From Macrostomum lignano (taxonomy: Eukaryota), in the NCBI GenBank assembly GCA_002269645.1, contig NIVC01000271.1, positions 124,001 to 188,000 on the forward strand: a stretch of DNA of 64,000 nt, in the 5' to 3' direction. Position 1 is the first letter of the stretch. Each line of letters starts with the position of its first letter. The position numbers were made by a program, and so were the translations under genes. This document shows positions 12,453-64,000 of this stretch, piece after piece. The notes under the pieces were generated by a model. The model did not search any database and had not been told where the DNA came from. It worked only from the letters and a program-made list of their open reading frames with translations.

Positions 12453-12458
12453 TTTATT
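12453..12458 (-). terminator. Candidate poly(A) signal AATAAA for TTI1
   Basis: First AATAAA on the minus strand after the TTI1 stop and the satellite, followed by a T-rich downstream stretch. Further AATAAA at 12406-12401 and 12346-12341. Confidence 0.45.
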
Positions 12459-12529
12459 AACAAAATACATGCGTTGTACAAGCAGAGGAAGGTATTGGCA
12501 TTACTGAATCAAGGAAAGACTTAAACATA

Positions 12530-13305: not shown

Positions 13306-13377
13306 GTTAAATCGAATTTCGAGACACCCCCCCCCTAGCAACAATGATAAAGAATGAGTCTAAATTCAGTCTTAAGT

Positions 13378-38596: not shown

Positions 38597-38624
38597 ATAG
38601 ATGGATAGATAGATAGATAGATAC

Positions 38625-38687
<63 letters not shown>

Positions 38688-38716
38688 CATAGATATATGG
38701 ATAGATAGATAGATAC

Positions 38717-38751
<35 letters not shown>

Positions 38752-38780
38752 CATAGATATATGGATAGATAGATAGATAA

Positions 38781-38846
<66 letters not shown>

Positions 38847-38860
38847 TCATAAATAGATGC

Positions 38861-38910
<50 letters not shown>

Positions 38911-38924
38911 TCATAAATAGATGC

Positions 38925-38987
<63 letters not shown>

Positions 38988-39016
38988 CATAGATATATGG
39001 ATAGATAGATAGATAA

Positions 39017-39094
<78 letters not shown>

Positions 39095-39108
39095 TCATAA
39101 ATAGATGC

Positions 39109-39151
<43 letters not shown>

Positions 39152-39180
39152 CATAGATATATGGATAGATAGATAGATAA

Positions 39181-39236
<56 letters not shown>

Positions 39237-39240
39237 ATAC
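38597..39240. repeat. (GATA)n microsatellite, about 640 bp, with internal higher-order variants
   Basis: Direct tetranucleotide run. Confidence 0.97.
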
Positions 39241-39954: not shown

Positions 39955-40510
39955 CAGGATACTGTTTTAAACTACAGTCCAGGTATTCTCAGAGGTCCTT
40001 ATGCAGACCAGACTGTTTTAAACTACAGTCCAGGTGTTCTCAGAGGTCCTTATGCAGACCGGACTGTTTTAAACTACAGTCCAGGTATTCTCAGAGGTCC
40101 TTATGCAGACCAGACTGTTTTAAACTACAGTCCAGGTGTTCTCAGAGGTCCTTATGCAGACCAGACTGTTTTAAACTACAGTCCAGGTATTCTCAGAGGT
40201 CCTTATGCAGACCAGACTGTTTTAAACTACAGTCCAGGTATTCTCAGAGGTCCTTATGCAGACCAGACTGTTTTAAACTACAGTCCAGGTGTTCTCAGAG
40301 GTCCTTATGCAGACCAGACTGTTTTAAACTACAGTCCAGGTGTTCTCAGAGGTCCTTATGCAGACCAGACTGTTTTAAACTACAGTCCAGGTGTTCTCAG
40401 AGGTCCTTATGCAGACCAGACTGTTTTAAACTACAGTCCAGGTGTTCTCAGAGGTCCTTATGCAAACTGGACTGTTTTAAACTCCAGTCCAGGTGTTCTC
40501 AGAGGTCCTC
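39955..40510. repeat. 51-bp minisatellite immediately upstream of the NCS gene
   Basis: About 11 copies of GTCCTTATGCAGACCAGACTGTTTTAAACTACAGTCCAGGT(A/G)TTCTCAGAG. Confidence 0.95.
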
Positions 40511-40707
40511 AGACAACTAGCGGCGGTGCATGCACTAAACCTCCGTCTGATTCAGTAAATTTCTCCCATTTGAGTTGATCTGATTCGTTGAGTTTGTTCC
40601 AATGAAAAGCGTATACGAACTCGTATATTTGTATAACTATTGCTGTGAACTCTGGTGTAGACGCTATTTACTTGATTAGTAACACTGACTCCAATGCTTG
40701 AAAACCA

Positions 40708-43258: not shown

Positions 43259-43316
43259 CTAAAACTATAGTTTAACATGTGCCCGCATAGGCACATGTTG
43301 ATATTCTCGTTATTCT

Positions 43317-43949
43317 CGGGAATTTCCAACTATCTCATAGTTGGATTCAGATAGATAAATGGCGCTGACGTTAAATGTTAAAAGTTCTAAACATGAGAGT
43401 CCAAGTCGCGCTCAAATATCCTTGTCGTTAAGGATGGAAACCTTCTCCACGTAGTCACCGTTGCAGTTGACGCATTTCTCCCAGCGAATGACCAATGAAA
43501 CAATGGCATGCGCGTACTGCTCCTTGGGAATCGCATAAACAAGGAGGCGCCGAACCTCTTCTTCAAGGCAGTGACGATTGGCGTAGACTCTTAGCAGCTC
43601 CTTCAGCCTCGGAAAAAGACAAAAATTTGCTGGAGAGCAAGGTGGGTGAGGCAGGAGTTCAATCTTAATGCGTCGAATTGCCTCCACTGTCCTTGAAGCT
43701 GTGTGTAGTCGGGCGTTGTCATGGTGGAGCATCGGTGGGTTGATTAAAGTCATTTTCTGTAATCTATACCCAGGGTCACAGTACTAGATTGGACAGAACT
43801 TCTGAATGCCCGTAGATATTTACAAAATTCAAAAACTATGTTATAGATAGCTGAAGCCGCTTTCATTTAACGTCAGCGCCATTCATCTATCTCAGGAATT
43901 CAACTATGAGTTAAGTTGGAAATTCCCACAATACTTTTTGGACACTCCG
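43317..43949 (-). mobile_element. Internally deleted mariner (Tc1/mariner) element with C-terminal transposase remnant
   Basis: Inverted termini of about 60 bp (GGGAATTTCCAACT...AGATAGAT.AATGGCGCTGACGTTAAATG). The right end reads ...TTTTTGGACACTCCG|TA. ORF 43412..43753 has LHHDNARLHT and LLPHPPCSP..F.LF..LK, the mariner D,D34D region. Confidence 0.85.
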
Positions 43950-44754
43950 TATTAAAATCTATATTTTTTTCATCGAAGTCCCGTTTTAGTCCCATTGATA
44001 TATCAATCAGATTCATGCAAATCTAGCAAAATGGCACGTGTATTTCTCGAAAAAGCATACCTTTAAAAATACCTATACATGTATGTATAACAAATTTATT
44101 CGAAAGGTTACGTTTCAAATATAACTTTAAGCTACGTCATCATTGAAAGATAAATTTGACAGACCAAAAATCAACTATCGAACCTAACCTAAAATCTAAG
44201 TTCTAGCCGAAATCACAACGATAACCTAAACCATAATCATAACCTGAACTAAAACCCTAGCCTATAAACCGTAATCCTAACCTAAACCATAGCCCTAACC
44301 TGAGCCATAACCCTACCAAGAGTCAAAATGCTTCCCATTTAAACACACCCTTCGAACACATACTTTTTAATCCACTTACATATACTTTTCATTATTTTAC
44401 AGTTAGCATGTCTCTAAAGAGTTCTGACTTGATTTAGTTCTAAAACACTCAAAACTTTCTCTTGTCTTCTCAGCTTAGCTGCCCGCAAAATTAAATAAGT
44501 CGAATAAGCCGACTTATAAAATGCGTATTAATTTGACTTTCAATGGATAACGCTATTATTTATAACCCCTGGAACCTGGCGCCATTTTAAATAACTTTAC
44601 TTCAACATTTTAATAAGTCTTGTTTATTCAATTAGACGCCTTTCAACTTCAACTTCAAATTCAAATAAACTAGAATGGAGTAAATAAAACATCGATATGA
44701 AAAGTATTGGTGTATTTAGTATTTCTTCATTTCCCACTTGGACCCGACCTACAC

Positions 44755-45230
44755 AAAACTAAAAAAACGTATTCATTCCCCACTTAGGCTGAGCCATAGA
44801 CTAAAGAAACGTATTTATTATCCACTTGCGCTGGGCCATAGACTACAGAAACGTATTTATTATCCACTTGCGCTGGGCCATAAACTACAGAAACGTATTT
44901 ATTATCCACTTGCGCTGGGCCATAAACTACAGAAACGTATTCATTCCCCACTTAGGCTGAGCCATAGACTACAGAAACGTATTTATTATCCACTTGCGCT
45001 GGGCCATAAACTACAGAAACGTATTTATTATCCACTTGCGCTGGGCCATAAACTACAGAAACGTATTTATTATCCACTTGCGCTGGGCCATAAACTACAG
45101 AAACGTATTTATTCCCCACTTATACTGGGCCAAAGACTACAGAATCGTTTTTATTACCCACTTGGGTACGGAAATAAACTACAGAAACATTTTTCTTCCC
45201 CACTCAGGCACGGTAACAGACTACAGAAAT
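44755..45230. repeat. 42-bp minisatellite (TACAGAAACGTATTTATTATCCACTTGCGCTGGGCCATAAAC)n
   Basis: About 11 copies; the source of ORFs 44738..45268 and 44994..45317. Confidence 0.95.
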
Positions 45231-46059
45231 ATCCTTCTACTGCAGTTGTTCATACATTCTACGAGTAGGTACATTCTGTGGTTCTGCAGATACCAGATGA
45301 GCATTGAACACTTTTAAATTATTTAAAACAGCATCTCTAATGGCCTCGGAGTTGGCAGAAATTCAATGATATATAAAACGTGAAAATCTGCATTGCGAAA
45401 AACGCAGTAAAGTTCAGAACTGGTGTGTTTTATTAGGTGTTTTAATTTATGATTTCTCATTTAAATTTTTCAAGTTCTGAAAATTCTATTTGGCCTCGAT
45501 TTTTTGTTATATTTAAGATTGCGAGTTACTCTTTTTTGCGTTTGTCTCTGAATATATCAATTTTTCGTGGCTTTTTATTAGGCCGAACTCGGCACACAGT
45601 TGCACCGATATTTTCTATTAAAACAGTTATGCAAATTTGAGTTAACATAAACTGCTTGGCACTTAAGTGAGAATCTAAACTGCAAAATTTGTTATTCTTA
45701 GGTGGCAACATTACCCGATGATTTAGATATTTTTAGTTAGTTAGGGTCACGGGACTCTGGCGCAGCATGTACACTTCACTGTGCCTTGGTGGTTGGGCCT
45801 CAAGGGCGTCAGTTGCATGACCAAAAAGCCAAGCCGAGATTCCAATTTAGCTTCAAATTAATGTGACTGCACTTGGAAACGAGCCTGGGCCGCTGGGACA
45901 TCAGAGCGTTGCACTAAACCACTAGGCTAGGGCATCCCTAAGTTAGAAAGCGATTCTGTAGAATATACTACTGAATGAATAGTATGATTTTCAAGTTTAG
46001 GATTAAACTGTTTTTTACAACCTGAAGTCCGCGAGGCTGTTGTTCTAAGACTTGGACGC

Positions 46060-46330
46060 TATATGAGCAAAAAACGGCAGGTTGAAGCACCTTCAAGATC
46101 AGAGGCCTGGTCCGTCCATTGCGCCGTCGGCGACTCCAGCTGGCAAGCCGCATCATCCACTCCGAGTCGCATTGCTCACAGCCGGTGCATGACGTCCTGC
46201 TGCCGTGGCTGCAAACAGCCTATACTACCGGAGAGGACAAGGCGCGCACTCGGTATTTTGTTGACTGTCTGTTTGGTCTGTTGTTTGAGTAGGCTCAAGC
46301 TTTGAGGCGTGCCCTGTGTGGCGCTGTTGT
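46060..46330 (+). pseudogene. 3' remnant of an RTE-type non-LTR retrotransposon ORF
   Basis: An unlisted frame reads PLRRRRLQLASRIIHSESHCSQPVHDVLLPWLQ...ARTRYFVDCL. This resembles the post-RT C-terminus RRRL.LAGH..R of RTE-like LINEs (recalled, not searched). It is followed by a (GTT)n-rich tract. Confidence 0.5.
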
Positions 46331-46539
46331 GATTTTCTTTCAAGAAACCTTGATGACAGTGTGAATGTCTTATTATTATTGTTGTTGTCTCTGTTGTTGG
46401 TTTCGTTGTTGTTTTTGTGTTTATTGTTATTTTAACTGTTTATTTGTTGTAGCTTAATGTATATTTCTATTGTTGCTAGTAGTTGTTATATGTTTAGTTG
46501 CTACTGTTGTTCTACTTGCTTGTTCATAGTGTCGTTATT

Positions 46540-46574
<35 letters not shown>

Positions 46575-47097
46575 GCTGTTGATTTTGCTGTTATTGTTGT
46601 TGGATCGGCAAGCATGGAAATGAAGCCATGGAGTTGCCTTTGTAAATTAATATTCACCTGTTCAAGGATCCTACGCACCATGCACTACTTTCAAGGAACA
46701 ATTGCTGGAGATTCAAGTAATTATTACAGCAGCCACATACATTTAGATGCAGAATCATAATCAGCTGAAATATTATTCAAGTTAGGCAGACCGAAAAATG
46801 TTTGTTTTTCAAATTATCTTTGAAATTAAATCTTTAAGTTATTCTACATAGAAATATGAAAATTCTTCAAACACTTGAAATTCGAAGCTACTTCAGCCTT
46901 GGGAAAGTAGATTAATGTAATTATGAAAATAGTGAATTCTTTCGTCTCCAGCAGCATTATTCGGTTCATTGTCGCCCCACGGAGAGAGTAGTCCACAGTG
47001 AGGTTGCAGCTGACCCAGTACCATGCGGCCGCCATCCGGCTCTCAGGACTGCCAGCTGGCTGATAACCTCCAAGCCAGATCGTCCGGCTCTCTGCCC

Positions 47098-47225
47098 GAG
47101 TGAGTCCAAAGCAGGACCGGCTCAAGCTTCAATAGACCAGTCATCGCGTGGCTTGGCTGTGCAAACGTGAGCGATAACTTGTTGCGCGGTCGTTCGTTCT
47201 AAAATAAAAACCTGTAAGCATGTAT
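47098..47225 (+). repeat. Dispersed repeat of about 130 bp, also at 59617-59745
   Basis: Both copies share GTGAGTCCAA..AGGACCGGCTCAAGCTTCAAT..GGCTTGGCTGTGCAAACGTGAGC..TAACTTGTTGCGCGGTCGTTC..CTAAAATAAAAA. Confidence 0.85.
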
Positions 47226-50055
47226 TAGGCCGGATTCTTCACCAACAAAAAAACGCCACTTGCAGGTACGACGGAATTGACATCTTTGGGCCAGGTTGAG
47301 CTGTCAGGTTCGATCAACCTTCAACTTTTGGTAGCCCCAAGCCATGTATGATCTGCGAGCGTATAATTGTAGAAATTCGTAATTTAGCGTTCATGCGCTA
47401 TTTATACTACTCTTTTTGAGGCAGTTAGTAGGCAAGCCGCGAGTTTTAATTGCGATTTTTCAAAATATACCCATTCCAACAAGATTCTCGCCCATGACAG
47501 CCATCCCTTTAGAGTGTGTCCATGTCCGAGGCATGAGAAAGTCAGGGCCACTGTGCACCCTGTGTGTTTGTGTGACTGCGCGCGTATCAGTGTTTGTGCA
47601 TTAGGCATTTCTTGGGACAAGCGTGTATAAACTGACCCGTGCTATTAGGACCAAAAATGTGTTGGGCCAGGCCCAATAAGTGCGTCCCGACACTTCCAAA
47701 AATGAATTCTATTGAAATGAAAAAATATTCATTGGAACCGTCTTTCGATTCTCCTTTCAAAAATCAATGTCATTTTTTCATATTTTTAATCAAACACGGG
47801 GAATCTAATGATTTGCAGTGTCCTAAGAAGTTTAAAAAATTATGCGAACTGATGGTATGATCCAACAGAACAATTGGGTCTCAAATCGGAATTCTCGTTT
47901 TATTACAATATTTCTTACAATATCAAGAAAGTCTACTACAAGTAACAGATAGAGGTTCTCCACAGGGCTGCCAATCGACACTTGAAAGGATCCTGACATT
48001 TGGCATCGTGTTTACTATAAAATATGAAATAATTTAATAAAGATTTAGAATATTACAATCAAGCATACAAACCTTATAGATTTAGTATATTTAGATTTTT
48101 GCATAGAAACAGCTAGCATCTAAATTCATTAGCTTCCAATTTCACTTATACACGAAACATGGAAAATTAAGGTTACATCCGCCTGTGCCCTCGGCCATTT
48201 TAACTGAAATTCTCGTTTTCAGTCAGCTGCATTAATCTATTTGTCATATGTGAATGGGTATTAACTGACTCAAGTTAGTGACTGGAGGCCATTAACGTAA
48301 AGTGACACTTTGAGTGAGGTAGTTTTCCGGTGGAAATTCTCACAGTCTTATGAAGCGCTTTTAGAGCAAAGAAATAAAGGGCAAAGAAAAACTTTGCATT
48401 CCCCAGAAAACCGAGGACGAGTATTAGAGGGAAACGTTTAATCTCTAAGGCTTTAAATGACTTCCTTATTGGCCTGGGTTTGGGCAGCCATACTATGTAG
48501 CAAATTTTTCCTAGAATTATGATAATTATCGTCTGGTATACTGAAAAGTACGGAGATACCAAGAAACTTAAGATGACTGCATGGACTGCTAGCACATGTT
48601 TGAGTGTCACTGTCACTGTAAAGTCGAAATCGATGACTAGTTGGCCCAAAACTACTACTAGGCCTTCCTGAAAAACAATTCTGCTTATCTTGGATCGTAA
48701 AGATAAACCCATGTACAGTGCAGAAGTGTTAGGACAAGCGTGTACAAGACCCAGGCAATCCCTTACCCAGGCCACGTGTACATTCCTATCGCGGCGGGGG
48801 GAAGCGGGGAGGAGAGGCGGGCGCAAGGGAGTCGGGATAAAGTTTACACTGAAGTTGAGGCCTACAAGAGGAAGAGCCAATTCTAACGGAAAGGTACATG
48901 TAGAAGTTCCCTTTGACAAAAGGCGTACTGGCGGTACTGCATATGTTAAAACGAATATAATTCATTTACGAGACCTGCACTACACAGACAAAATGTGCCA
49001 CGTCACAAGAGTTTCCATGCATGACCTGGCATGAAAAGACTTGGCTAGGAACCATTACACATATGTAAGTAGAATTTAAAATTCTTTTTAAAATTTTATG
49101 ATTAAATAAAAACTTAACTGGAATTTACATATGTACTTTTCTAAAATTCCAGATACGTTGATATCGATAAGCTACCGTTTTCTTCTATAACAAACAGATT
49201 TGCCTTCATTGTCAAGTAAGTCTTGTCTCGTACTCGTATATGTCGTATTTTTGTACGTTGAAAAAATAATAAGCAGCCTAGTAATACTCTGAGCTCAGTG
49301 AAATATAAGAGAGGCGGCACGATCACCTTATTTATCAATTAATTTACAACAGCACTACACAGCACTCATAAGTAGGCAAAATTTACACTTCTAGGAAGAA
49401 CAAATTTTACTAAAAGTTTCAATCAAAACATTTAGGAAAGAAATCTCGCATGACACATCGCCCACAGTACTAGAGACTTGGAGAAATACCATGTGAGTTT
49501 GCAGGGCAACTAATATAATATATTACTGTTATAATTCGATAGTCAAATTATTTTTCTACTCAAAGCAGTATTATTACATAACTAAAGAACAGTATAAAAT
49601 GACAGCATTCTAGAACGAGAAACAAAGCTTACTGCAAAGGCAAACGCCGAAAGAAAAGCAGGGCAGAGTCAGCAACAAAAAAGAAGCTCATCTGATTGGG
49701 AAGATGGGCGGTCAGCAAAGAGATAGGATCTCAGAAAATTGCAACTCCCAGTAACTGAAACTTAATTGCAATAAGTGTTTTGTTCTCTAGGGCATTATTA
49801 AAACAAGCAAGCCTGCCTGCAGTCAGCTAAGGGCAAAGTAAGTTGCTGCGGCACTATCGAGAAAGTGAAATTTGTACATACTCCATCTAACTGACACAAG
49901 CAGCACCGTTGGGACAAACTACGAGTATTTTAATTGTACAGTAAAATTTCATTGACAATGAAGCATTTATTAGAACAGCGACATTTAAATCTGTTTTCAA
50001 ACAAATCAGACAGATTTCTCAATAAGTGATTTTTCTTTTATGCGCTCACGCACAG

Positions 50056-50860
50056 GTTCATCCGCATTCAAACTCGCCGCTGCATCCGTCATTTGGTTCA
50101 CTTGCTGCTCACAAGCCGCAGCAGCAGCAGCAGCAGCAGCAGCCGCTATCCGTGCAGGCAGTCAGTCTATTTGTGAATTTTCTGGTGGATCTGAAGAAAA
50201 CCCGTCCGGCACAGGATTAAAGAGAAAGAGACGATCTGTTTTGGGTGAGTATTATCTGCTGTAGAAGTATTGTACACCAGAGTACTTGTGTTACTTGGTA
50301 GAGCACAATTCAAAAGCAATGCAACAATCTCAGTGGCATTGTTGGGACACAAGCTACAAACGCAATGAATAGTAAACACAGCCCAGCCTAGCTCAAGGCT
50401 AGTAATTTGTTGGGCATTTATTGGGACATTGCAGCCAGGCCTATTTTTTGAACAGCATTTGTTGGGTCGCACTTATTGGGTGTTGCGACTTTCCTAGTCA
50501 TTTCTTAGTTCACCTTCACTTGTCTCTGTTTACTCTGTTTTCTCTCTCTCTCTCTCTCTGTCTAGCTCAATCTTGATAATAATTGGGACAATACTGATTC
50601 TAATCGCGACTACTTCTGAGTTCTGACTTTTCAAAACAGACCCAGCATTAGTTGAACACGTTCTATTAAAGGGTTCCTTTATAGCCTTTTAATGATTACT
50701 AAGGCAAGCCTATCTTAATTGATTTCTTTTCCTCGCAGATTCTGAAGTCAGCCACGCCAGCGACATGCCTAAGAGACAAGAATGCGCTTTAACGATCAGC
50801 AGCGAGCATTCTGATCTCACCGCTGCATCCGTCATTTGGTTCACTTGCTGCTCACAAGCC

Positions 50861-50893
<33 letters not shown>

Positions 50894-51502
50894 GCTATCC
50901 GTGCAGGCAGTCAGTCTATTTGTGAATTTTCTGGTGGATCTGAAGAAAACCCGTCCGGCACAGGATTAAAGAGAAAGAGACGATCTGTTTTGGGTGAGTA
51001 TTATCTGCTGTAGAAGTATTGTACACCAGAGTACTTGTGTTACTTGGTAGAGCACAATTCAAAAGCAATGCAACAATCTCAGTGGCATTGTTGGGACACA
51101 AGCTACAAACGCAATGAATAGTAAACACAGCCCAGCCTAGCTCAAGGCTAGTAATTTGTTGGGCATTTATTGGGACATTGCAGCCAGGCCTATTTTTTGA
51201 ACAGCATTTGTTGGGTCGCACTTATTGGGACAATACTGATTCTAATCGCGACTACTTCTGAGTTCTGACTTTTCAAAACAGACCCAGCATTAGTTGAACA
51301 CGTTCTATTAAAGGGTTCCTTTATAGCCTATTAATGATTACTAAGGCAAGCCTATCTTAATTGATTTCTTTTCCTCGCAGATTCTGAAGTCAGCCACGCC
51401 AGCGACATGCCTAAGAGACAAGAATGCGCTTTAACGATCAGCAGCGAGCATTCTGATCTCGCCGCTGCATCCGTCATTTGGTTCACTTGCTGCTCACAAG
51501 CC

Positions 51503-51535
<33 letters not shown>

Positions 51536-52144
51536 GCTATCCGTGCAGGCAGTCAGTCTATTTGTGAATTTTCTGGTGGATCTGAAGAAAACCCGTCCGG
51601 CACAGGATTAAAGAGAAAGAGACGATCTGTTTTGGGTGAGTATTATCTGCTGTAGAAGTATTGTACACCAGAGTACTTGTGTTACTTGGTAGAGCACAAT
51701 TCAAAAGCAATGCAACAATCTCAGTGGCATTGTTGGGACACAAGCTACAAACGCAATGAATAGTAAACACAGCCCAGCCTAGCTCAAGGCTAGTAATTTG
51801 TTGGGCATTTATTGGGACATTGCAGCCAGGCCTATTTTTTGAACAGCATTTGTTGGGTCGCACTTATTGGGACAATACTGATTCTAATCGCGACTACTTC
51901 TGAGTTCTGACTTTTCAAAACAGACCCAGCATTAGTTGAACACGTTCTATTAAAGGGTTCCTTTATAGCCTATTAATGATTACTAAGGCAAGCCTATCTT
52001 AATTGATTTCTTTTCCTCGCAGATTCTGAAGTCAGCCACGCCAGCGACATGCCTAAGAGACAAGAATGCGCTTTAACGATCAGCAGCGAGCATTCTGATC
52101 TCGCCGCTGCATCCGTCATTTGGTTCACTTGCTGCTCACAAGCC

Positions 52145-52180
<36 letters not shown>

Positions 52181-52790
52181 GCTATCCGTGCAGGCAGTCA
52201 GTCTATTTGTGAATTTTCTGGTGGATCTGAAGAAAACCCGTCCGGCACAGGATTAAAGAGAAAGAGACGATCTGTTTTGGGTGAGTATTATCTGCTGTAG
52301 AAGTATTGTACACCAGAGTACTTGTGTTACTTGGTAGAGCACAATTCAAAAGCAATGCAACAATCTCAGTGGCATTGTTGGGACACAAGCTACAAACGCA
52401 ATGAATAGTAAACACAGCCCAGCCTAGCTCAAGGCTAGTAATTTGTTGGGCATTTATTGGGACATTGCAGCCAGGCCTATTTTTTGAACAGCATTTGTTG
52501 GGTCGCACTTATTGGGACAATACTGATTCTAATCGCGACTACTTCTGAGTTCTGACTTTTCAAAACAGACCCAGCATTAGTTGAACACGTTCTATTAAAG
52601 GGTTCCTTTATAGCCTATTAATGATTACTAAAGGCAAGCCTATCTTAATTGATTTCTTTTCCTCGCAGATTCTGAAGTCAGCCACGCCAGCGACATGCCT
52701 AAGAGACAAGAATGCGCTTTAACGATCAGCAGCGAGCATTCTGATCTCGCCGCTGCATCCGTCATTTGGTTCACTTGCTGCTCACAAGCC

Positions 52791-52823
<33 letters not shown>

Positions 52824-53432
52824 GCTATCCGTGCAGGCAGTCAGTCTATTTGTGAATTTTCTGGTGGATCTGAAGAAAACCCGTCCGGCACAGGATTAAA
52901 GAGAAAGAGACGATCTGTTTTGGGTGAGTATTATCTGCTGTAGAAGTATTGTACACCAGAGTACTTGTGTTACTTGGTAGAGCACAATTCAAAAGCAATG
53001 CAACAATCTCAGTGGCATTGTTGGGACACAAGCTACAAACGCAATGAATAGTAAACACAGCCCAGCCTAGCTCAAGGCTAGTAATTTGTTGGGCATTTAT
53101 TGGGACATTGCAGCCAGGCCTATTTTTTGAACAGCATTTGTTGGGTCGCACTTATTGGGACAATACTGATTCTAATCGCGACTACTTCTGAGTTCTGACT
53201 TTTCAAAACAGACCCAGCATTAGTTGAACACGTTCTATTAAAGGGTTCCTTTATAGCCTATTAATGATTACTAAAGCAAGCCTATCTTAATTGATTTCTT
53301 TTCCTCGCAGATTCTGAAGTCAGCCACGCCAGCGACATGCCTAAGAGACAAGAATGCGCTTTAACGATCAGCAGCGAGCATTCTGATCTCGCCGCTGCAT
53401 CCGTCATTTGGTTCACTTGCTGCTCACAAGCC

Positions 53433-53465
<33 letters not shown>

Positions 53466-54715
53466 GCTATCCGTGCAGGCAGTCAGTCTATTTGTGAATT
53501 TTCTGGTGGATCTGAAGAAAACCCGTCCGGCACAGGATTAAAGAGAAAGAGACGATCTGTTTTGGGTGAGTATTATCTGCTGTAGAAGTATTGTACACCA
53601 GAGTACTTGTGTTACTTGGTAGAGCACAATTCAAAAGCAATGCAACAATCTCAGTGGCATTGTTGGGACACAAGCTACAAACGCAATGAATAGTAAACAC
53701 AGCCCAGCCTAGCTCAAGGCTAGTAATTTGTTGGGCATTTATTGGGACATTGCAGCCAGGCCTATTTTTTGAACAGCATTTGTTGGGTCGCACTTATTGG
53801 GACAATACTGATTCTAATCGCGACTACTTCTGAGTTCTGACTTTTCAAAACAGACCCAGCATTAGTTGAACACGTTCTATTAAAGGGTTCCTTTATAGCC
53901 TATTAATGATTACTAAGGCAAGCCTATCTTAATTGATTTCTTTTCCTCGCAGATTCTGAAGTCAGCCACGCCAGCGACATGCCTAAGAGACAAGAATGCG
54001 CTTTAACGATCAGCAGCGAGCATTCTGATCTCGCCGCTGCATCCGTCATTTGGTTCACTTGCTGCTCACAAGCCGCAGCGCAGCAGCAGCAGCAGCAGCA
54101 GCAGCCGCTATCCGTGCAGGCAGTCAGTCTATTTGTGAATTTTCTGGTGGATCTGAAGAAAACCCGTCCGGCACAGGATTAAAGAGAAAGAGACGATCTG
54201 TTTTGGGTGAGTATTATCTGCTGTAGAAGTATTGTACACCAGAGTACTTGTGTTACTTGGTAGAGCACAATTCAAAAGCAATGCAACAATCTCAGTGGCA
54301 TTGTTGGGACACAAGCTACAAACGCAATGAATAGTAAACACAGCCCAGCCTAGCTCAAGGCTAGTAATTTGTTGGGCATTTATTGGGACATTGCAGCCAG
54401 GCCTATTTTTTGAACAGCATTTGTTGGGTCGCACTTATTGGGACAATACTGATTCTAATCGCGACTACTTCTGAGTTCTGACTTTTCAAAACAGACCCAG
54501 CATTAGTTGAACACGTTCTATTAAAGGGTTCCTTTATAGCCTATTAATGATTACTAAGGCAAGCCTATCTTAATTGATTTCTTTTCCTCGCAGATTCTGA
54601 AGTCAGCCACGCCAGCGACATGCCTAAGAGACAAGAATGCGCTTTAACGATCAGCAGCGAGCATTCTGATCTCGCCGCTGCATCCGTCATTTGGTTCACT
54701 TGCTGCTCACAAGCC

Positions 54716-54748
<33 letters not shown>

Positions 54749-55357
54749 GCTATCCGTGCAGGCAGTCAGTCTATTTGTGAATTTTCTGGTGGATCTGAAG
54801 AAAACCCGTCCGGCACAGGATTAAAGAGAAAGAGACGATCTGTTTTGGGTGAGTATTATCTGCTGTAGAAGTATTGTACACCAGAGTACTTGTGTTACTT
54901 GGTAGAGCACAATTCAAAAGCAATGCAACAATCTCAGTGGCATTGTTGGGACACAAGCTACAAACGCAATGAATAGTAAACACAGCCCAGCCTAGCTCAA
55001 GGCTAGTAATTTGTTGGGCATTTATTGGGACATTGCAGCCAGGCCTATTTTTTGAACAGCATTTGTTGGGTCGCACTTATTGGGACAATACTGATTCTAA
55101 TCGCGACTACTTCTGAGTTCTGACTTTTCAAAACAGACCCAGCATTAGTTGAACACGTTCTATTAAAGGGTTCCTTTATAGCCTATTAATGATTACTAAG
55201 GCAAGCCTATCTTAATTGATTTCTTTTCCTCGCAGATTCTGAAGTCAGCCACGCCAGCGACATGCCTAAGAGACAAGAATGCGCTTTAACGATCAGCAGC
55301 GAGCATTCTGATCTCGCCGCTGCATCCGTCATTTGGTTCACTTGCTGCTCACAAGCC

Positions 55358-55390
<33 letters not shown>

Positions 55391-56050
55391 GCTATCCGTG
55401 CAGGCAGTCAGTCTATTTGTGAATTTTCTGGTGGATCTGAAGAAAACCCGTCCGGCACAGGATTAAAGAGAAAGAGACGATCTGTTTTGGGTGAGTATTA
55501 TCTGCTGTAGAAGTATTGTACACCAGAGTACTTGTGTTACTTGGTAGAGCACAATTCAAAAGCAATGCAACAATCTCAGTGGCATTGTTGGGACACAAGC
55601 TACAAACGCAATGAATAGTAAACACAGCCCAGCCTAGCTCAAGGCTAGTAATTTGTTGGGCATTTATTGGGACATTGCAGCCAGGCCTATTTTTTGAACA
55701 GCATTTGTTGGGTCGCACTTATTGGGACAATACTGATTCTAATCGCGACTACTTCTGAGTTCTGACTTTTCAAAACAGACCCAGCATTAGTTGAACACGT
55801 TCTATTAAAGGGTTCCTTTATAGCCTATTAATGATTACTAAGGCAAGCCTATCTTAATTGATTTCTTTTCCTCGCAGATTCTGAAGTCAGCCACGCCAGC
55901 GACATGCCTAAGAGACAAGAATGCGCTTTAACGATCAGCAGCGAGCATTCTGATCTCGCCGCTGCATCCGTCATTTGGTTCACTTGCTGCTCACAAGCCG
56001 CAGCAGCAGCAGCAGCAGCAGCCGCTATCTGTGCAGCAGTCAGTTAATTC
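50056..56050 (+). repeat. 642-bp tandem array (about 9 units) amplifying an exon+intron unit
   Basis: Unit starts at 50739, 51381, 52023, 52669, 53311, 53953, 54594, 55236 and 55878. Copies are nearly identical apart from (GCA)n length and single-base changes. Confidence 0.97.
50739..55950 (+). CDS. Putative multi-exon gene of repeated 255-nt symmetric exons (poly-Ala, KRKRR); expression unproven
   Basis: Each unit has the acceptor TTGATTTCTTTTCCTCGCAG, a 255-nt exon (258 nt in copy 3) open only in phase 1, and the donor G|GTGAGT. Copy 6 has a 1-bp frameshift. Confidence 0.4.
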
Positions 56051-56242
56051 ATGAGTTTTCTGGCGGAGCTGGATATTTTTTAATTTTCTGAATTGAGAAG
56101 CCGATTAACTGTTGTGTGCTTCACTGGAATATTATTTAGAGGACGCATTTTTTGCAGTCTGTTTCTAATAAAACCGGTGCAATGACCGCGGTAGAGCTCT
56201 AGCATTTGCTTTTTATAGTATTTGTGTATATTCTTTTTCAAG

Positions 56243-56572
56243 CTATGCTGGAATTGTTGGGACAGCCCTATCCACACTGGCTATGGTGGAATTGTTGGGA
56301 CAGCCCCATCCACACTGGCTATGGTGGAATTGTTGGGACAGCCCTATCCACACTGGCTATGGTGGAATTGTTGGGACAGCCCCATCCACACTGGCTATGG
56401 TGGAATTGTTGGGACAGCCCATCCACACTGGCTATGGTGGAATTGTTGGGACAGCCCCATCCACACTGGCTATGCTGGAATTGTTGGACAGCCCTATCCA
56501 CACTGGCTATGGTGGAATTGTTGGACAGCCCTATCCACACTGGCTATGCTGGAATTGTTGGGACAGCCCTAT
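56243..56572. repeat. 38-bp minisatellite (CTATGGTGGAATTGTTGGGACAGCCCCATCCACACTGG)n
   Basis: About 9 copies. Confidence 0.95.
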
Positions 56573-57936
56573 ACTATAGTGTGTGCTGGCTTCTGCTATA
56601 GTGTGGTTCATTTCCGCATCCTTTTACGTAGCATTCTGTGGGTCCGAATAGCTGACATGTACGAGCTACCTTTTGAGTAATTCTAGTGATTGTGTCTTAA
56701 TCAATAAAGTACATTTTTATGAACAGTGGAGTTTCGCTACAGAATTGTTTTTTTCCCAGTGGCACTAAATGTAGCAAATTTTGTTTATTCAGATCGTAAA
56801 ATTTTTTTGATATGTGTCAATGTCGTTTGTTTTCGATAACCTTAAAGTCCCTTGCCATTTACCATCCTGTCTTCTATAATCTATGATCGCTGAAATTATC
56901 CTGTGAAATTTGACGCGCTGATATTATTGCCTTAAGTGGAATTCAGCAAGACACCAGGGTTTTTTAATTCTGTTTTAGACAAGTATACATGTACAATCTG
57001 TTGTGAGTTCAATGCACCTCGAAAAATGCTTTCCAACTGTTTTCAGTAAGCCAAAAGCATGTTGTCAATAAAAATCGATTTGGTGGGTTGAAAATTGCCT
57101 GTGTGGGGACGTGTGTGTGTGTGATTTTTCGTGTGTCGGAGCAGTCCCAATATGTGCAAGCTTTTGCACACTTGGCCAATAAGTGCCTCGTGCACGTTTG
57201 TGTGTGTGTGTGTGTGTGCGTGTGTGCGTACTCGGAGCTCAGAGGAGCTGCTACTATAATAGGGTGCATTAGGGGACCGGAACTAAATTATAGTAACTCT
57301 TAAGGCTATAGAACGACATTCGCTAATTTAAATTAAAACTCGCCACCTGCTTTATAATAAATTAACAAAGCCAGACTAATGTTTGCAGAGAGAGTGTTTA
57401 TTGGTGATTGGTAATATTATTACAGACTTAATTTCTAAGCTCTTATGATGTTCATGATGGTAAACTGGGTTAATTGCCTATTAACTTTACATCACTGCTC
57501 ACTAATGCTATTATCTGTGCATCAATTGTCTTTGGTTTTGCAGTCTATTATAATACAGTATCCTACAGTCTGGTCAGGTCTTTGCTTCACTCGTAACTCT
57601 CGTTATATATACTACTTGTAATATGCTTCTGAAGCCCGCTATTGATTAATATGTGTTTTGCATACTGATAAATAAACTATGCTAGATTATTTATCCATCT
57701 GATTTATGGTTCGACATTTTATCTTAATAGAAAATTGCACTTAAAAAGTCAAATAGTTATTTTTTAATTTATCGATAACAAGAGCCGATAAAATTTACCG
57801 ATGCTGTTTATTTGTTTAGATTGTTCAGGATTATTTTGTTAAAACAGTAAAAATTAGCAAGTGTCACAGCTGTTACCGAGAGTCTTAAAACAGTCGTAGA
57901 ACCTGGCTCGGATCGGGGCTGCAACAGTTCAGTTTT

Positions 57937-58257
57937 TTAGACAACGCCGCACACCATCGTGTTGTCTCCGGTTGAGAAGGCGTCACTCTTAGTCACGCTG
58001 CCGAACTTCATCCAGCAGGTGCCGCCGTTGTAGCGGGTCCAGGCGAAGTGGGTGCAGCGGTGGGTTCGGGCGCAGGCGCCACCGCACTGCTCGCCGGGCA
58101 TCCGCTCATTCTTCAGATCGCGGTTGTAGAAGTCGCAACCGAACGCCCAGTTGCCGTTCCAGCGGATGCGTCGAGCCTCTACTTGAGTTGACACGGCGCA
58201 AAGAAGACCTAAGAACACCAGTAGAACCTTCAACGAGCTGATACGGCCGGCCATCAT
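57937..58257 (-). CDS. Small secreted PAN/Apple-domain (PAN_4, CBEL-like) protein, 106 aa
   Basis: Intronless GC-rich ORF with a hydrophobic signal peptide (LKVLLVFLGLLCAVSTQVEA). The mature part has WAFGCDF..RDL....GEQCGGAC..T.RCTHFAW...NGGTCWMK...MVCG, a six-Cys Apple pattern. Confidence 0.85.
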   Translation of the reverse strand: MMAGRISSLKVLLVFLGLLCAVSTQVEARRIRWNGNWAFGCDFYNRDLKNERMPGEQCGGACARTHRCTHFAWTRYNGGTCWMKFGSVTKSDAFSTGDNTMVCGVV

Positions 58258-59104
58258 TGCGCTCTGCAGGAAATTTAAATTGCGATGAAAGGACGCCTTA
58301 AATATGAATGAATAAACGCTTAAAGATATTCCTGGAATTTAGGACCATGAAGTGGTTGTTCTGAAAGTGGTTTAGAGCCGGTCAAGTGTAGGCTTAAATG
58401 GCCTTCTTAATCTTAAGACCTATCTAAAGTAATTACAAGAGCAAACAAAGATTGACAGAAACTTACCGAAGCTTTTGTGGTTGACTCTCGGTAAGAATAA
58501 ACTAGAAATTACGCTTGTAGTACTTTGCAACCGATCCTGAGATGATTTTGTGTTTGAGTGAGTCAATTTTTACCTGCTTTTATAGACTAGAAAGTTCTTC
58601 AGTCGCAGCATTGGTTTGGGGTGACGAAGTGGCCCAGCTCTGACGCTATTGGCTGTCGCGCAAGTCCATCGTGCAGGTTAATTGTCTTCACTCGTGAGGG
58701 CCAGTTTATTACCCCCACGACTCAGAAAGTGTACATGCTGTAAGTGAGTCAGGGCCCTCGTGCTAAGCACCTGTGTGAAGGTGCGTGCACACTGGGGGGG
58801 GGGTTTGCAATTTTGAAATTAATCTTCCAATTAAGGCTGATTTGTGCATTGAAAATGAATCACGCATCATAAAAACTTTCTTTAAGATAAATATATAATG
58901 GTTATTAGTTTAGTTTTATTATGCAATCACTCCACTTGAACTTTTGCCACTGATGCAATATATCGTTTGAAGCAATTTAAACTGGATAAATTATCGGTGA
59001 TTAAAGCCATGGGCAACTAAGGTAAGGACAAGTTACATAATTGTCGCTGCATGTCAGTTTTGCATGTATCTGCAGTATGCATTTGCAAGAAAGGCAGTTT
59101 TCCT

Positions 59105-59372
59105 TTTTCATTTTGAAGGGGCGCCGTTCCATTTTGAAGGGGCGCCATTCCATTTTGAAGGGGCGCCGTTCCATTTTGAAGGGGCGCCATTCCATTTTGA
59201 AGGGGCGCCGTTCCATTTTGAAGGGGCGCCATTCCATTTTGAAGGGGCGCCATTCCATTTTGAAGGGGCGCCATTCCATTTTGAAGGGGCGCCATTCCAT
59301 TTTGAAGATGCGCCATTCAATTTTGAAGGGGCGCCATTCCATTTTGAAGGGGCGCCATTCCATTTTGAAGGG
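59105..59372. repeat. 21-bp minisatellite (CCATTTTGAAGGGGCGCCATT)n
   Basis: About 13 copies. Confidence 0.95.
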
Positions 59373-59383
59373 AAGCAAAGCAT

Positions 59384-59520
59384 CAGGGTCTGAGCCAACA
59401 CCCCCGCCAGCACCAGGGTCTGAGCCAACACCCCCGCCAGCACCAGGGTCTGAGCCAACACCCCCGCCAGCACCAGGGTCTGAGCCAACACCCCCGCCAG
59501 CACCAGGGTCTGAGCCAACA
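59384..59520. repeat. 30-bp minisatellite (CAGGGTCTGAGCCAACACCCCCGCCAGCAC)n
   Basis: About 4.5 perfect copies. Confidence 0.95.
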
Positions 59521-59616
59521 TGTATATTGTACTATTTAGGTGACCTCTGGCGTCAGAATGCTGCTAATGTAAACAGAAATAGCACCTGGTGTTTGGCTTC
59601 GTGAGTCTAAGTCCAA

Positions 59617-59745
59617 GTGAGTCCAAGGAGGACCGGCTCAAGCTTCAATTGACGAGTCATCACTTGGCTTGGCTGTGCAAACGTGAGCTATAACTTGTTG
59701 CGCGGTCGTTCTTCGTCTAAAATAAAAATGAAGCATGACTGGAAA
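59617..59745 (+). repeat. Second copy of the 130-bp dispersed repeat (see 47098)
   Basis: Direct sequence match to 47098-47225. Confidence 0.85.
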
Positions 59746-61680
59746 TTAAGGCTTAATCTACTTTAATTAGTAGTCCTTGAGCCGTGTATAAGCTAGATTG
59801 TTGCTGCTGGTGAACCTATGATGAGCAGGCAGTATGTATGGAATCAGACTGTGAAGGCCTGAACTTAAGCGTAGCTATCTGGAACCGTCAATTGTGTGTA
59901 TACGGTACAGCACAATTTACACATCCCTGCGATGATATGTTTGCCACGAATCTCTTATTCCCGACATTTGCCTAGCAACCACGCCACGTTGCAAGTTTCC
60001 ACTCTCATTTTATATAGCTTTTATATGGACACGCGAAGATCACTCATCTAAAGATTTCTTAGTTGGCTACAAAATTATACGGGTTTAGATTTGATTGAAG
60101 TATGAGCATCATCGGTCAGGTTATAAACATTTCCCACATTTTTTAGGATCGTTTGAGGGCCTTTATCGAATAAGTGCATGTACGTATATGTATATGACGT
60201 TTGTTAGCCAACTCAGCGAATTCAGAATAAATCTCAGAAAATAATAAATGGCCCTCTGATGCAAGCCGAGGAGATCCCTGGAAAAAGGAAAAACAGGATG
60301 AAATGTCAGATCACTGTTCTGTTTTGGGGCTGATGCGCCCAAGCAATGCTGCCTTAATTCTGGCAGTAGGTTATGTACATGAATATACATGCAGTTGCGC
60401 AAGTCAACAATACGAAGAACACAAACAATAAGGCACCAGAGAAAGACGAAGGACACTACTATAGATATAATATACTCGTATGCGTATGCAATAAATACTA
60501 ATCGCAGGTATTGCACTTAACTATCGTTTTTTAATTAATCCTAACATAAATAAATAGTATATTTAAATTTTAAACGTTTCATAAAGCTCTTTGTTGTTAA
60601 ACGGGGTGGGAAGCTGGGCTTACCCGCGGATCAGCCCTGGGGGGGGGGCTCTGCCGCTAGTGGGGCACTTTCCTAGGGCACTTTCGTGGACCCGAGATAC
60701 CCTCCTCGGAAGACCAAGAACCATGTGAATTGGGCCCTGACATAAGCCAGGGGAGAGCAAAGGGACCTCAAGCCTACGGTACAAGACACCGCGCCAACCC
60801 AATATTAGTGGAATCAGGGACGGTACAAGGACTGAGTCCACCCAGGCCACCCCCCCAGCAGACAAGTCCTCGGGAGTGCGCGAAAAAACAGAATTGGAAT
60901 TATTAGTAAAAGCTGTCCAAGAGCGGGGAAACCCAGAAGTCTTGGAAAGGGCTTGATTATTGGAGAGTCTGGAAGGCTTGTTTCCGAGGGCGAGACTCCA
61001 GGCAGGAAGACCGTCTACCGGCTACAAACCCAAGGGTATCGCCTATCCAGCTCATTATTGGGGGCCAGGCCAAGGGGGGCGGGGAGGGGCACAAGGAGCA
61101 AGAGGAAACCGGACTCAGCCGGTTTTCCCCGATTCGGGACGAACATCCTTCCCAGGACTCCAATCCACTGTCAGAGATGAGAGCCAAGGCGCAAAAGCAG
61201 GGAGACAACCAGAGGAGCCAGCAGATGGACCAAGGACAGAGCAGGATGGACCGGGCAGGTAGGGCAGAGCTCATAACTCCAAAGAAATTCTTCATAAAGC
61301 TCTTTAAAGCACCATACCCAGAAGGCGATCTGTTTAGCTATTTATATATAATCCTTAATGCTATGCGCTACCAGTTACTAAACTCAAAATAAGAAATAAA
61401 TAAATGTTTCAGCCTTGAATAGTTAATGCACTATTTAGCCTGCTAGCGTTTTATATTCGACATCCAATTTAAATGTTTTGTTTTCTTATACGCGGTATCA
61501 AAAATGGCACGAATACAGTTTCCAATCCTGTCGGACTTTTCCAAGAATAGTTACCTTTTCGTCGATCCTGAATTGCTGTAACGTATTTGTCTGCGAAAAC
61601 AAATCTGTATAGTAGCTAAAATCCTGTAGTCGCAGTAATATTTGTAAATCGGTGTAATATTCCTGTTGTATATTTATGTT

Positions 61681-61812
61681 ATGGATAATTCGCCTAGTAT
61701 ATCCCCTGCTGCTCCTATTGATATCCAAGTTGAGAAAGCAGATGATCAAATTCAAAGTGAAAACTTGGAACTTGACCTAGCTCAAGCTTTGGGTTTAGAA
61801 ACTCTGGATGAA
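61681..61812 (+). CDS. Candidate first coding exon of an unidentified gene (MDNSPSISPAAPIDIQVEKADDQIQSENLELDLAQALGLETLDE)
   Basis: ATG-initiated 44-codon acidic ORF ending at a consensus GAA|GTAAGT donor. No downstream exon or homology established. Confidence 0.3.
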
Positions 61813-62114
61813 GTAAGTAATCTAAGTAGTTTTTTAGTTTGAATTCTTATTTTTGACACGGAATTAAGTGTTTTCATTGTTTTATAATTATAAATTCAAT
61901 TTATTCAGATAGTAAATAGAAACCCCACAATTTGACTTGAGTTTAATATTTATTTATAATATTAGGAAACTTTTAGTGTCATTATTATTAACTTTGTCAT
62001 TTTGCATAATCCTCTTTGAAACTCAAATGTTGTAGTTTTGGATTTAATTTTAAAAGAATTAAAAAAATAATATATAGATAGTTTATAAAATTATAGTTAT
62101 CAATGGTTATATGA

Positions 62115-63775
62115 CGAGTATAACTTTGGCCATCAACTTTTCTGTCAACTTTTCCGTCAACTTTTCCGTTAACTTTTCTGTCAACTTTTCCGTCAAGTAT
62201 TCCGTCAACTTTTCCATCAAGTATTCTGTCAAATTTTCCGTCAACAATTTATTGTTCTGAAAAAAACATGTGGCTTTCTCAAATAGGATCATCATGCGAG
62301 TAGCTCTTTGATCATTTATTGTGTTTGCATGCTTATATATATCAATGAAAAAACAAGCCTGCACTGCATTAGTAACAACGTACATCTTTTCCATTTTCCC
62401 TAGTACTAGTGCTTTATTTCACAAAGATAAATTGATGAACAAGTGCAGATGTTGTAGTGCAGGTAGTGTAGCAATACCAATTAAATTCTGGAACATGTCG
62501 CACTGGAAATTTTTGTGTGTGTTTTTTATTTCTAATTTACACATGTACATGTGTATATACTCAACAAATTTAAAGCATGTATAAAAAATTGCTAAGGAAA
62601 CTGCACTTATGCAAAAAATTAACACTTTCCATTCAGAGTACACAAAAAATTTGATAGAATATATTTCACAGACTTGCATAAATGTTGATGAAATAGTTAA
62701 CGGAAAAGTGTGAGATATTTGGCGGAAAAGTTAATGGAAATGTTGACAGAAGAGTTAACGGAAAAATTTATCGGAATACTTGATGGAATAGTTAACGGAA
62801 AAGTTAACGGAAAAGTTGACGGAAAAGTTTGACGTAAAAGTTGACAGAATAGTTAACGGAAAAAGTTATTTATCCTACTAACACGAAAATGTGCCAGGCC
62901 TTCTGGCTCTGTCTTTCTAAACTTCTAACTATTAGCGTTTATTAAATATCCCACTATTGCCACCAGCTGTGACAGGTGTTATTCCTACAGTTATCCTGAT
63001 TATACTTGTTTCTACTCCCTAACTATTTCTTAGAATTTCATTTAAATATTTCTGGGTAGCGTTCTTAGTAGCGTCTCTGGTAGCGTATGGCTTGCTTTCT
63101 GGTAGCGTTCTGGTAGCTTATGGCTTGCTTTCTGGTAGCGTTCTGGTAGCTTATGGCTTGCTTTCTGGTAGCGTTCTGGTAGCTTATGGCTTGCTTTCTG
63201 GTAGCGTTCTGGTAGCTTATGGCCTGAGCGGTCTAGTACTGGTATATGTATTAGTGAATAGTCCTAATCGGGCGTTACCGAGACTAGAGGGTCACGGCGC
63301 CTCTTTTAGTATAACTCCAAGAATTAGTCCCAATTTCCCTTCTCTTAGCAAATTTCTTAGAATCATTTCACAGGTTTTTGCAAATGAATAAGTCGCTATT
63401 CAACTTAAAGACTTTGAAAGGTTTAGATCAAACTGCTTGTTTTGTTTGCAATATAGCTCACAGGTATCAGACAGTTGGTTTATTTGCTATAAAATCGCTC
63501 CTATATATAGTGGTTTCCCCCCATACAATTAAAACAAAAAATAATTCCCCAATTTATTTCGCGCAGTAAAACAAAAATATTCGGTACGGTAAAACAAAAT
63601 ATTTATCTAGTATTTCGCACGAGTTTAGTTTCTAAGAAAACATACCTTTATTGCTCAAAATTCGTACAGTATTAAAGCACTACTACAAAAAGTTGACGGA
63701 ATAGTTGACGGAATAGTTAACAGAAAAGTTAATGGAAAAGTTGACGGAAAAGTTGATGGCCAAAGTTATACTCAT
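62115..63775. mobile_element. Mutator/foldback-like non-autonomous element, about 1.66 kb
   Basis: Inverted termini GAGTATAACTTTGGCCATCAACTTTTC with inverted arrays of a 12-bp unit (AACTTTTCCGTC). Flanked by a 9-bp direct repeat GTTATATGA at 62106-62114 and 63776-63784; the ends are offset by 1 nt. Confidence 0.7.
63070..63245. repeat. 33-bp minisatellite (CTGGTAGCGTTCTGGTAGCTTATGGCTTGCTTT)n inside the Mutator-like element
   Basis: About 5 copies; the source of ORF 63092..63391. Confidence 0.9.
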
Positions 63776-64000
63776 GTTATATGAGACATAAGTCTAATTT
63801 TTCTGAGAAATCTGAGAAAATGTCTTAGTGGCCTAATCTAAAAAAGTTAGAAGACTTACTATAATAATGTATTCATTTTTTGTGAACTTTCTAGTAAAGT
63901 AATACTTTAAACCATACCTAAGAATAGCTAAAGGACTTCTTCAAGTTTAAGTTGATAAAATACTTTTGATTTTACTATTTTTAAAAACTTTTTTAGCATA

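Follow-up and report, generated by a model that had tools for sequence, protein, structure and literature searches.

A 64,000-nucleotide stretch of the Macrostomum lignano genome (contig NIVC01000271.1, positions 124,001 to 188,000, here called the window) contains, at positions 50073-56029 of its forward strand, a tandem array of about 9.3 head-to-tail copies of one 642-bp unit, each unit carrying an exon and an intron. The array is probably a young, continually homogenised, transcribed exon-intron macrosatellite, without detectable coding constraint, in a locus specific to M. lignano. A preliminary description of the window had seen in it a repeat protein in the making, a view that fits poorly with the nonsense and frameshift mutations carried by related arrays that are themselves expanding and homogenising, and with exons that vary like introns.

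The preliminary description divided the region into an exon A (50056-50244, 189 nt), a terminal exon B (from 55878) and eight hybrid exons between them, all on the forward strand. Exon A has its AG acceptor at 50055/50056 and is followed at 50245 by a GTGAGT donor; exon B extends over 55878-56172. The same structure is more simply described by the 642-bp unit, which consists, in order, of a block shared by A and B with a (GCA)n tract, the 3' part of A, an intron and the 5' part of B. The 5' edge of the array lies at 50073 inside exon A (CTCGCCGCT...) and the 3' edge at 56029 inside exon B, and both edges are clean joins to unique flanking sequence. Acceptor motifs follow one another at 642, 642, 646, 642, 642, 641, 642 and 642 bp, and donor motifs at 642-645 bp after a first interval of 749 bp. 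Gap-free blocks of 300 nt are 99-100% identical between copies, and the eight full units (641-646 bp) show pairwise identities of 99.2-100%, with a mean of 99.7%. Within each unit there is one complete exon of 254-258 nt and one complete intron of 387-388 nt. A permissive search with blastn and tblastn found no further unit copies or diverged exons in the window outside 50000-56100.

Six of the eight hybrid exons are 255 nt long: exon 1 (50739-50993, with a private A>T amino-acid variant), exon 2 (51381-51635), exon 4 (52669-52923), exon 5 (53311-53565), exon 7 (54594-54848) and exon 8 (55236-55490). Exon 3 (52023-52280, 258 nt) has one extra GCA, and exon 6 (53953-54206, 254 nt) has lost one nucleotide of its GCA run, which shifts it into a poly-Gln frame that stops after ...RPAQD. 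Private variants among the window units amount to one added GCA, one 1-nt deletion, two single-nucleotide polymorphisms and one extra A. Every hybrid exon is directly preceded by TTTTCCTCGCAG and directly followed by GTGAGT (8/8). The exons have phase 1-1 and, except for exon 6, lengths that are multiples of three, and the frame proposed in the preliminary description is the only one open across the hybrid exon. Since the exons are symmetrical, subsets of them can be skipped with the frame retained. On all these points (the composition from 5'-B and 3'-A, the splice signals, the single open phase-1 frame, the copy-6 frameshift and in-frame skipping) the coordinates bear out the preliminary description, with lengths that are mostly, not always, 255 nt.

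The two edge exons suggest how the unit arose. Exon B ends its coding sequence with ...ICAAVS and a TAA at 56045-56047, and an AATAAA at 56167-56172, 120 nt past this stop, is the only one within 50001-56400. The block that A and B had been said to share is present, but the homology continues past GCCGCTATC for another 43 nt, less identical and with a 1-nt indel. Past the shared block, 44 of 53 alignment columns are identical, a 10-nt identical anchor included. The 3' part of A recurs in diverged form at 56030-56071, and the 1-nt indel in this stretch gives B its immediate stop frame. From these alignments, B appears to hold an older, diverged A-type copy, of which the 100%-identical portion would be the part homogenised by the array. 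No decayed units were found 5' of A or 3' of 56071, where alignments scored like those of shuffled sequence (15.5 versus 12.7 +/- 2.0 and 13.0 versus 12.2 +/- 1.8); outlying homology near the array is limited to the 43-nt extension and a 17-nt minisatellite core described below.

The hybrid exons join 5'-B to 3'-A inside a block of about 100 nt that holds a (GCA)n tract of 7-18 repeats, which is the structure expected from unequal exchange between A and B within the shared block, as had been proposed. In an older duplication, an A-like block with its (GCA)n microsatellite would have entered exon B, the last exon. The first hybrid unit would then have come from unequal crossing-over or slippage in replication between the two blocks, aided by the microsatellite, and ongoing unequal exchange would let the arrays expand, contract and homogenise. 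The spliceosome would string the copies together, because each unit brings its own good acceptor, a GTGAGT donor and a length that is a multiple of three. The long open frame would simply follow from the copying of an exon that was open and symmetrical, and would be inherited, not selected. The transcript is most likely non-essential, either effectively non-coding or encoding a dispensable low-complexity peptide, because the frame shows no detectable coding constraint and is already broken in the window and in related arrays.

Three NCBI proteins led to three related loci, L001, L002 and L003, on contigs of the PacBio assembly Mlig_3_7 (GCA_002269645.1). The 5' flank of the window array is common to all three, with identities of 97.9%, 97.2% and 95.7%, respectively, or 1.05%, 1.6% and 2.4% divergence when substitutions alone are counted. 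Because of this shared flank, the three loci would be alleles or duplicated copies of the window locus, in agreement with the reported redundancy of the Mlig_3_7 assembly (PMC5730564) and with the recent genome duplication in M. lignano described in PMC12896417. Their arrays differ in size. Next to the eight hybrid exons of the window, L001 has exon A, nine hybrid exons and exon B; L002 has exon A and at least 16 hybrid exons, with the contig end falling inside the array; and L003 has exon A and at least four, after which the intron is broken by unrelated sequence at L003:11382. This interrupting sequence, from L003:11382 onward, is possibly a mobile element. The unit is not dispersed in the manner of a satellite, being absent from the rest of the window, and all three retrieved loci share the 5' flank.

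The array is genuine, with a labile copy number. An assembly artefact, in which one or two real units had been inflated or the copies homogenised by consensus polishing, is highly improbable. Long-read assemblers can misjudge the copy number of near-identical arrays, and the window units are unusually uniform, with the same (GCA) length in 6/8 of them, while those of L001 and L002 are heterogeneous. Against an artefact, three loci with the same flank carry arrays too, of 9 (L001), at least 16 (L002) and at least 4 (L003) units, the window units have the private variants listed above, and both array edges join unique flanks cleanly. Each array has fixed its diagnostic variants in every unit (D/H for the window and L001, A/N for L002 and L003), which indicates concerted evolution. 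Together with the flanks, these variants would group the window with L001 and L002 with L003.

This grouping bears on a segment of 107 bp at 50475-50581 (+) that distinguishes the first intron of the window (494 nt) from the remaining ones (387 nt). The segment was delimited by alignment of introns 1 and 2, contains a (CT)n run and has ATTGGG at both ends. The preliminary description was right that it is confined to intron 1 and bounded by ATTGGG. It had also taken the absence of the segment from later introns as the mark of the founding event, and this part cannot stand, because the first introns of L001, L002 and L003 all lack the segment, which is therefore private to the window copy. Their donor-to-acceptor spacing of 389-392 nt is the same as that of later introns, and no second copy of the segment was found in the window or the related loci. 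A private insertion requires one event and is more parsimonious than ancestral retention, which would need at least two independent losses. Alternatively, the segment could have been retained privately and erased elsewhere by gene conversion.

The reading frame has fared very differently among the four arrays. Units are intact in 7/8 cases in the window, 8/9 in L001 and 1/4 in L003; 4/16 units of L002 read through in frame, one of them by compensating shifts. A TGG>TAG change that replaces a tryptophan by a stop is found in 11/16 L002 units and 1/4 L003 units, and frameshifts occur in all four arrays (window unit 6, one of nine L001 units, and several units of both L002 and L003). The nonsense codon of L002 has been spread by the same homogenisation that maintains the array, and amplification is therefore indifferent to the frame. 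For a count of constraint, we considered substitution variants outside the GCA run in 35 aligned units from the four arrays. There are 10 variants in 223 exonic sites versus 12 in 387 intronic sites, and the exonic ones comprise eight non-synonymous, one nonsense and one synonymous change. Three exonic variants distinguish the array consensus sequences (D/A, H/N and W/stop). Exons are as variable as introns, and the ratio of 9:1 for non-synonymous and nonsense versus synonymous changes is what neutrality predicts; in this small sample, the frame does not appear to be kept by purifying selection.

Several observations weigh against a macrosatellite free of coding constraint. The window and L001 arrays are mostly intact, with 7/8 and 8/9 units in frame, and one or two copies of the locus could be functional while redundant copies decay after the genome duplication. 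Some of the damage may not be biological, since long-read assembly may have introduced the single-base indels seen in (GCA)n runs, and the constraint test is based on 22 substitution variants in all. The unit consensus differs by only 0.2-0.8% between loci versus 1.0-2.4% substitutions in the flanks, and constraint on the whole unit is a possible cause of this low divergence. In addition, another M. lignano protein, P0029 (UniProt A0A1I8FV09), contains a version of the hybrid exon that is about 50% identical and has no poly-Ala tract (...TINSEHSDIADALATSCLLAAQEQQRTLLMQTGCSQSIDDLSCGAKDNSSGKGLKRKRRSVL). Its exon is spliced to a normal ASEVSN exon, and it retains the same frame and the GLKRKRRSVL end, which hints at an older, possibly constrained, coding unit. 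P0029 may represent such an older unit or a separate paralogue; no match to its locus was found in the window or in L001-L003.

Transcription and splicing of the units can be followed in public gene models. The GenBank annotation of Mlig_3_7 was built from RNA evidence alone, with STAR, StringTie and TACO applied to RNA-seq data, together with a de novo transcriptome and trans-splice and poly(A) reads, and open reading frames (ORFs) were called by TransDecoder (PMC5730564). We recovered the models P0003 (L001) and P0002 (L002) residue for residue by excising GT..AG introns of 385-387 nt from the annotated ranges, and both include junctions that join ...KRKRRSVL to D/A-SEVS.... Consecutive hybrid exons are thus joined at the predicted G/AT (or G/CT) junctions in RNA-seq-derived NCBI models of related loci, which indirectly supports serial splicing of units at these sister loci. 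The G/AT junctions anticipated by the preliminary description are therefore found in RNA-based models, with the qualification that these belong to L001 and L002, not the window locus, are partial, covering two to three units, and do not include the ICAAVS end of exon B. A search for expression or tissue information on Mlig029855, Mlig003618 and Mlig033615 found none of these names in full text open to searching or in the supplements of three M. lignano papers.

In the UniProt models, which come from the older ML2 assembly, these exons are found in all three frames, as poly-Ala, poly-Gln or poly-Ser. The models also imply three alternative splice sites, which in an example unit lie at 51545-51557, 51588-51600 and 51436-51449: an in-frame donor, GGCA/GTCAGT, that gives a 171-nt exon; a frame-shifting donor, ACCC/GTCCGG, that gives a 214-nt exon; and an internal acceptor, CAGCAG/CGAGC. 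Public databases hold at least 27 different 'proteins' derived from this single repeat in three reading frames. Some of these models are named Dymeclin, UCH, BAF250_C or DRIM, names that their sequences do not justify.

Exon A had been proposed as an internal coding exon, and this is not supported: an upstream exon is undocumented, and database models read such exons in other frames. Five models (P0013, P0019, P0020, P0022 and P0027) do so for exons of the window type (SEVSH/VHPHS), and two (P0018 and P0023) for the exon types of related loci. Exon A is free of ATG codons from its acceptor at 50056 onward. The window does have one in frame at 50040, 5' of the proposed acceptor, which would yield MRSRTGSSAFKLAAASVIWFTCCSQ(A)11IRAG..., a sequence that looks like a secretory leader. 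L001, L002 and L003 all have GTG in its place, so this start is specific to the window and not conserved; the reading of exon A as the first coding exon, with a signal peptide begun at this ATG, was accordingly rejected as a conserved feature. Models P0018, P0020, P0023 and P0027 begin precisely at the base equivalent to 50056, which fits a true acceptor at this position. Given that the M. lignano spliced leader (SL) ends in ATG (PMC8629364), it may be a spliced-leader acceptor.

Whether a functional repeat protein is emerging at this locus can be weighed from these data, and we consider it unlikely. In its fuller form, this alternative holds that the locus is a functional or nascent gene for a secreted or membrane-associated modular protein, in which the exon array sets the number of modules, the modules may be released at an RKRR furin-type site, and the window copy and L001 are working copies while other related copies are decaying duplicates; we give it a minor share of belief. 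The frame open in 7/8 window units and 8/9 L001 units speaks for such a protein, as do the symmetrical exons with strong splice sites, RNA-based models that splice units serially in the poly-Ala frame, the canonical AATAAA 3' of exon B and the retention of frame and C-terminal motif by P0029 at about 50% identity. Several models are also auto-named 'Secreted protein' in UniProt. All units contain R-K-R-R, matching the motif R-X-[KR]-R, and the preliminary suggestion of a nuclear-localisation signal would be matched at least as well by a furin-type cleavage motif.

If translated, the product would be 22% alanine and 16% serine, with predicted peptides in the repeat frame that include SQSICEFSGGSEENPSGTGLK and QECALTISSEHSDLAAASVIWFTCCSQ. 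The Ala-rich stretch reaches a Kyte-Doolittle maximum of 1.5, below the usual transmembrane cut-off of 1.6, which counts against a membrane protein. In comparison with secreted polyproteins, an Ala-rich hydrophobic block in each unit is atypical for such precursors, and the single start codon of exon A is private to the window copy. Nonsense and frameshift mutations have spread through related arrays, the serial frame is already interrupted by exon 6 in the window, and the variant counts given above show exons varying as much as introns. Many models, moreover, use poly-Gln or poly-Ser frames or frame-shifting alternative sites.

Nor does the sequence match a fold or family. A protein search with the product of A and B returned 23 clusters, all from M. 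lignano, made up of three NCBI BOX15_Mlig entries and of entries in UniProt that go back to the older ML2 assembly. No homologue outside M. lignano was found in a word-indexed search or in a HMMER scan of 1.84 billion representatives; matches beyond the species were two weak ones to the unrelated repetitive proteins P0026 and P0028. The repeat sequence has no Pfam match and is, by these searches, an orphan specific to M. lignano. At the nucleotide level, the absence of an Rfam match at E<=1 in 49000-57500 led us to reject an array of structured RNA genes (SL RNA or small nuclear RNA, for instance). A narrower version of the protein hypothesis, which we regard as improbable, is a repeat-protein gene at birth: an orphan locus whose protein is lengthened by a fast-evolving exon macrosatellite seeded by a CAG/GCA microsatellite within the exon, and of which, following the recent genome duplication, one or two copies are kept as a modular secreted or membrane protein delimited by RKRR while others decay. 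In that case, copy number and in-frame skipping would generate isoform diversity.

The units could also be imagined as an array of mini-genes. Each would be an independent cistron with an SL acceptor, an AUG (MPKRQ...) and a peptide of 82-83 aa, resolved by spliced-leader trans-splicing as in an operon; with the GTGAGT donor unused, the peptide would end in GEYYLL. Unspliced ORFs of 82-83 aa are present in 7/8 units, several models start at MPKRQ and four start precisely at an acceptor. ATTAAA occurs in all introns 74 nt 5' of the acceptor (another one lies inside each exon). Trans-splicing affects about 30% of the genes of M. lignano, the distances between genes of an operon peak close to 100 bp, and the leader, as noted, ends in ATG (PMC8629364). 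Against these points, the RNA-based NCBI models show cis-splicing between units instead of termination, the acceptors do not match the enriched trans-splice motif [T/C]TNCAG (PMC8629364), and the units carry the same load of nonsense and frameshift mutations. We therefore think mini-genes very unlikely here.

In kind, the array is an intron-containing coding variable number tandem repeat (VNTR) or macrosatellite, that is, a tandem exon duplication, which is a known kind of structure. It has the unit of exon plus intron, the symmetrical phase and the variable copy number of a coding VNTR, but not the maintained frame. The classic intron-containing coding VNTR is the kringle-IV type 2 repeat (KIV-2) of human LPA. 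As in KIV-2, a whole exon and an intron are amplified head to tail with the frame preserved, the number of repeats differs among alleles or copies, and unequal crossing-over would be the driver of concerted evolution; splicing of the copies in series, a further feature of KIV-2, is indicated indirectly by the RNA-based models of related loci. The KIV-2 unit measures about 5.5 kb and has two exons that encode a conserved, folded kringle domain, in contrast to the Macrostomum unit of 642 bp with one exon and an orphan, low-complexity sequence under no detectable constraint, and many related units are broken.

Tandem exon duplication is a general route to repeat proteins, as in nebulin, collagens and mucin-like genes, and those genes have in common with the present array that unequal recombination has duplicated a symmetrical (phase 1-1) exon in tandem. 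Copies in those genes are diverged and maintained by selection, whereas the Macrostomum copies are 99-100% identical, with only edges A and B diverged. Schistosome micro-exon genes (MEGs) encode secreted flatworm proteins from symmetrical exons that are skipped combinatorially. They resemble the array in being lineage-specific flatworm loci with symmetrical internal exons that can be skipped in frame and, in some models, a predicted secretory leader. A micro-exon gene of the schistosome type was nevertheless ruled out, as MEG exons measure 6-36 nt and are not identical tandem copies, while the Macrostomum exons measure 189-258 nt and show no sequence similarity to them. Like euchromatic satellite or macrosatellite DNA, the array has nearly identical units, is homogenised locus by locus, changes in copy number and is indifferent to frame. 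Unlike satellite DNA, it is found in one locus family (the window and three related copies), has functional splice signals and is exonised. Simple and tandem repeats are reported to make up 15% of the M. lignano genome (PMC5730564).

Minisatellites are dense across the window, which contains more than 25 arrays with periods of 16-104 bp and an (ATAG)~160 run; examples lie at 10243-13312, 23379-24570, 28013-29429, 31020-32681, 38597-39239 and 40888-42067. One 24-bp repeat occurs at both 28-29.4 kb and 31-32.7 kb, and also 3' of the L001 array at about 86% identity. Just beyond exon B, at 56242-56572 (+), is a 38-bp minisatellite of 8.8 copies, whose core GTGGAATTGTTGGGACA resembles GTGGCATTGTTGGGACA, located about 89 nt into each repeated intron (e.g. 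51724-51740). The minisatellite and the repeated intron have in common a 17-nt core, GTGG[A/C]ATTGTTGGGACA, with an alignment score of 17 versus 8.8 +/- 1.6 for shuffles (maximum 15), which is suggestive only of a kinship between the two. The repeated intron also has five TTGGG motifs within 150 bp, and TTGTTGGGAC occurs 16 times in the window, with 0.1 occurrences expected by chance, always in the region of the array and the 38-bp minisatellite.

Conserved neighbouring genes in the window include, on the reverse strand, a homologue of TTI1 (TELO2-interacting protein 1) in a single ORF of 971 codons (14359-17274) and exons of a ubiquitin-specific protease with a UCH domain (7229-9617), and, on the forward strand, an exon with a BRO1 domain (33692-34048). 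A 106-aa ORF at 57937-58257 (-), 1.9 kb 3' of exon B and on the opposite strand, has an N-terminal hydrophobic leader and a PAN_4 domain with E=4e-6, just at the Pfam cut-off. Another ORF of 113 aa at 43412-43753 (-), with the segments HDNARLHTA and LLPHPPCSP, has no Pfam match at E<=0.01; our impression, presumably no firmer than that, is of the C-terminal part of a mariner-type transposase. At L001, a public antisense gene model (L001:1-20371, minus strand) of 981 aa with a TIR_2 domain covers the entire array. No TIR-like stretch stood out in the window at 40000-50000 and 56600-64000, where minus-strand frames of 70 aa or more between stops were inspected, no Pfam scan having been made of them.

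If the frame is translated, the locus would show clearly how a repeat protein can arise in nature in few steps: from an exon that contains a microsatellite, through an unequal exchange that involves two exons, to the amplification of a symmetrical exon-intron module. The four related copies would then show different outcomes of this process: intact, expanded but broken, and interrupted. More generally, where a genome is rich in repeats and recently duplicated, the dynamics of tandem repeats can give rise to long, spliced and seemingly open 'genes' in the absence of selection, and such repeat 'genes' call for caution in annotation.

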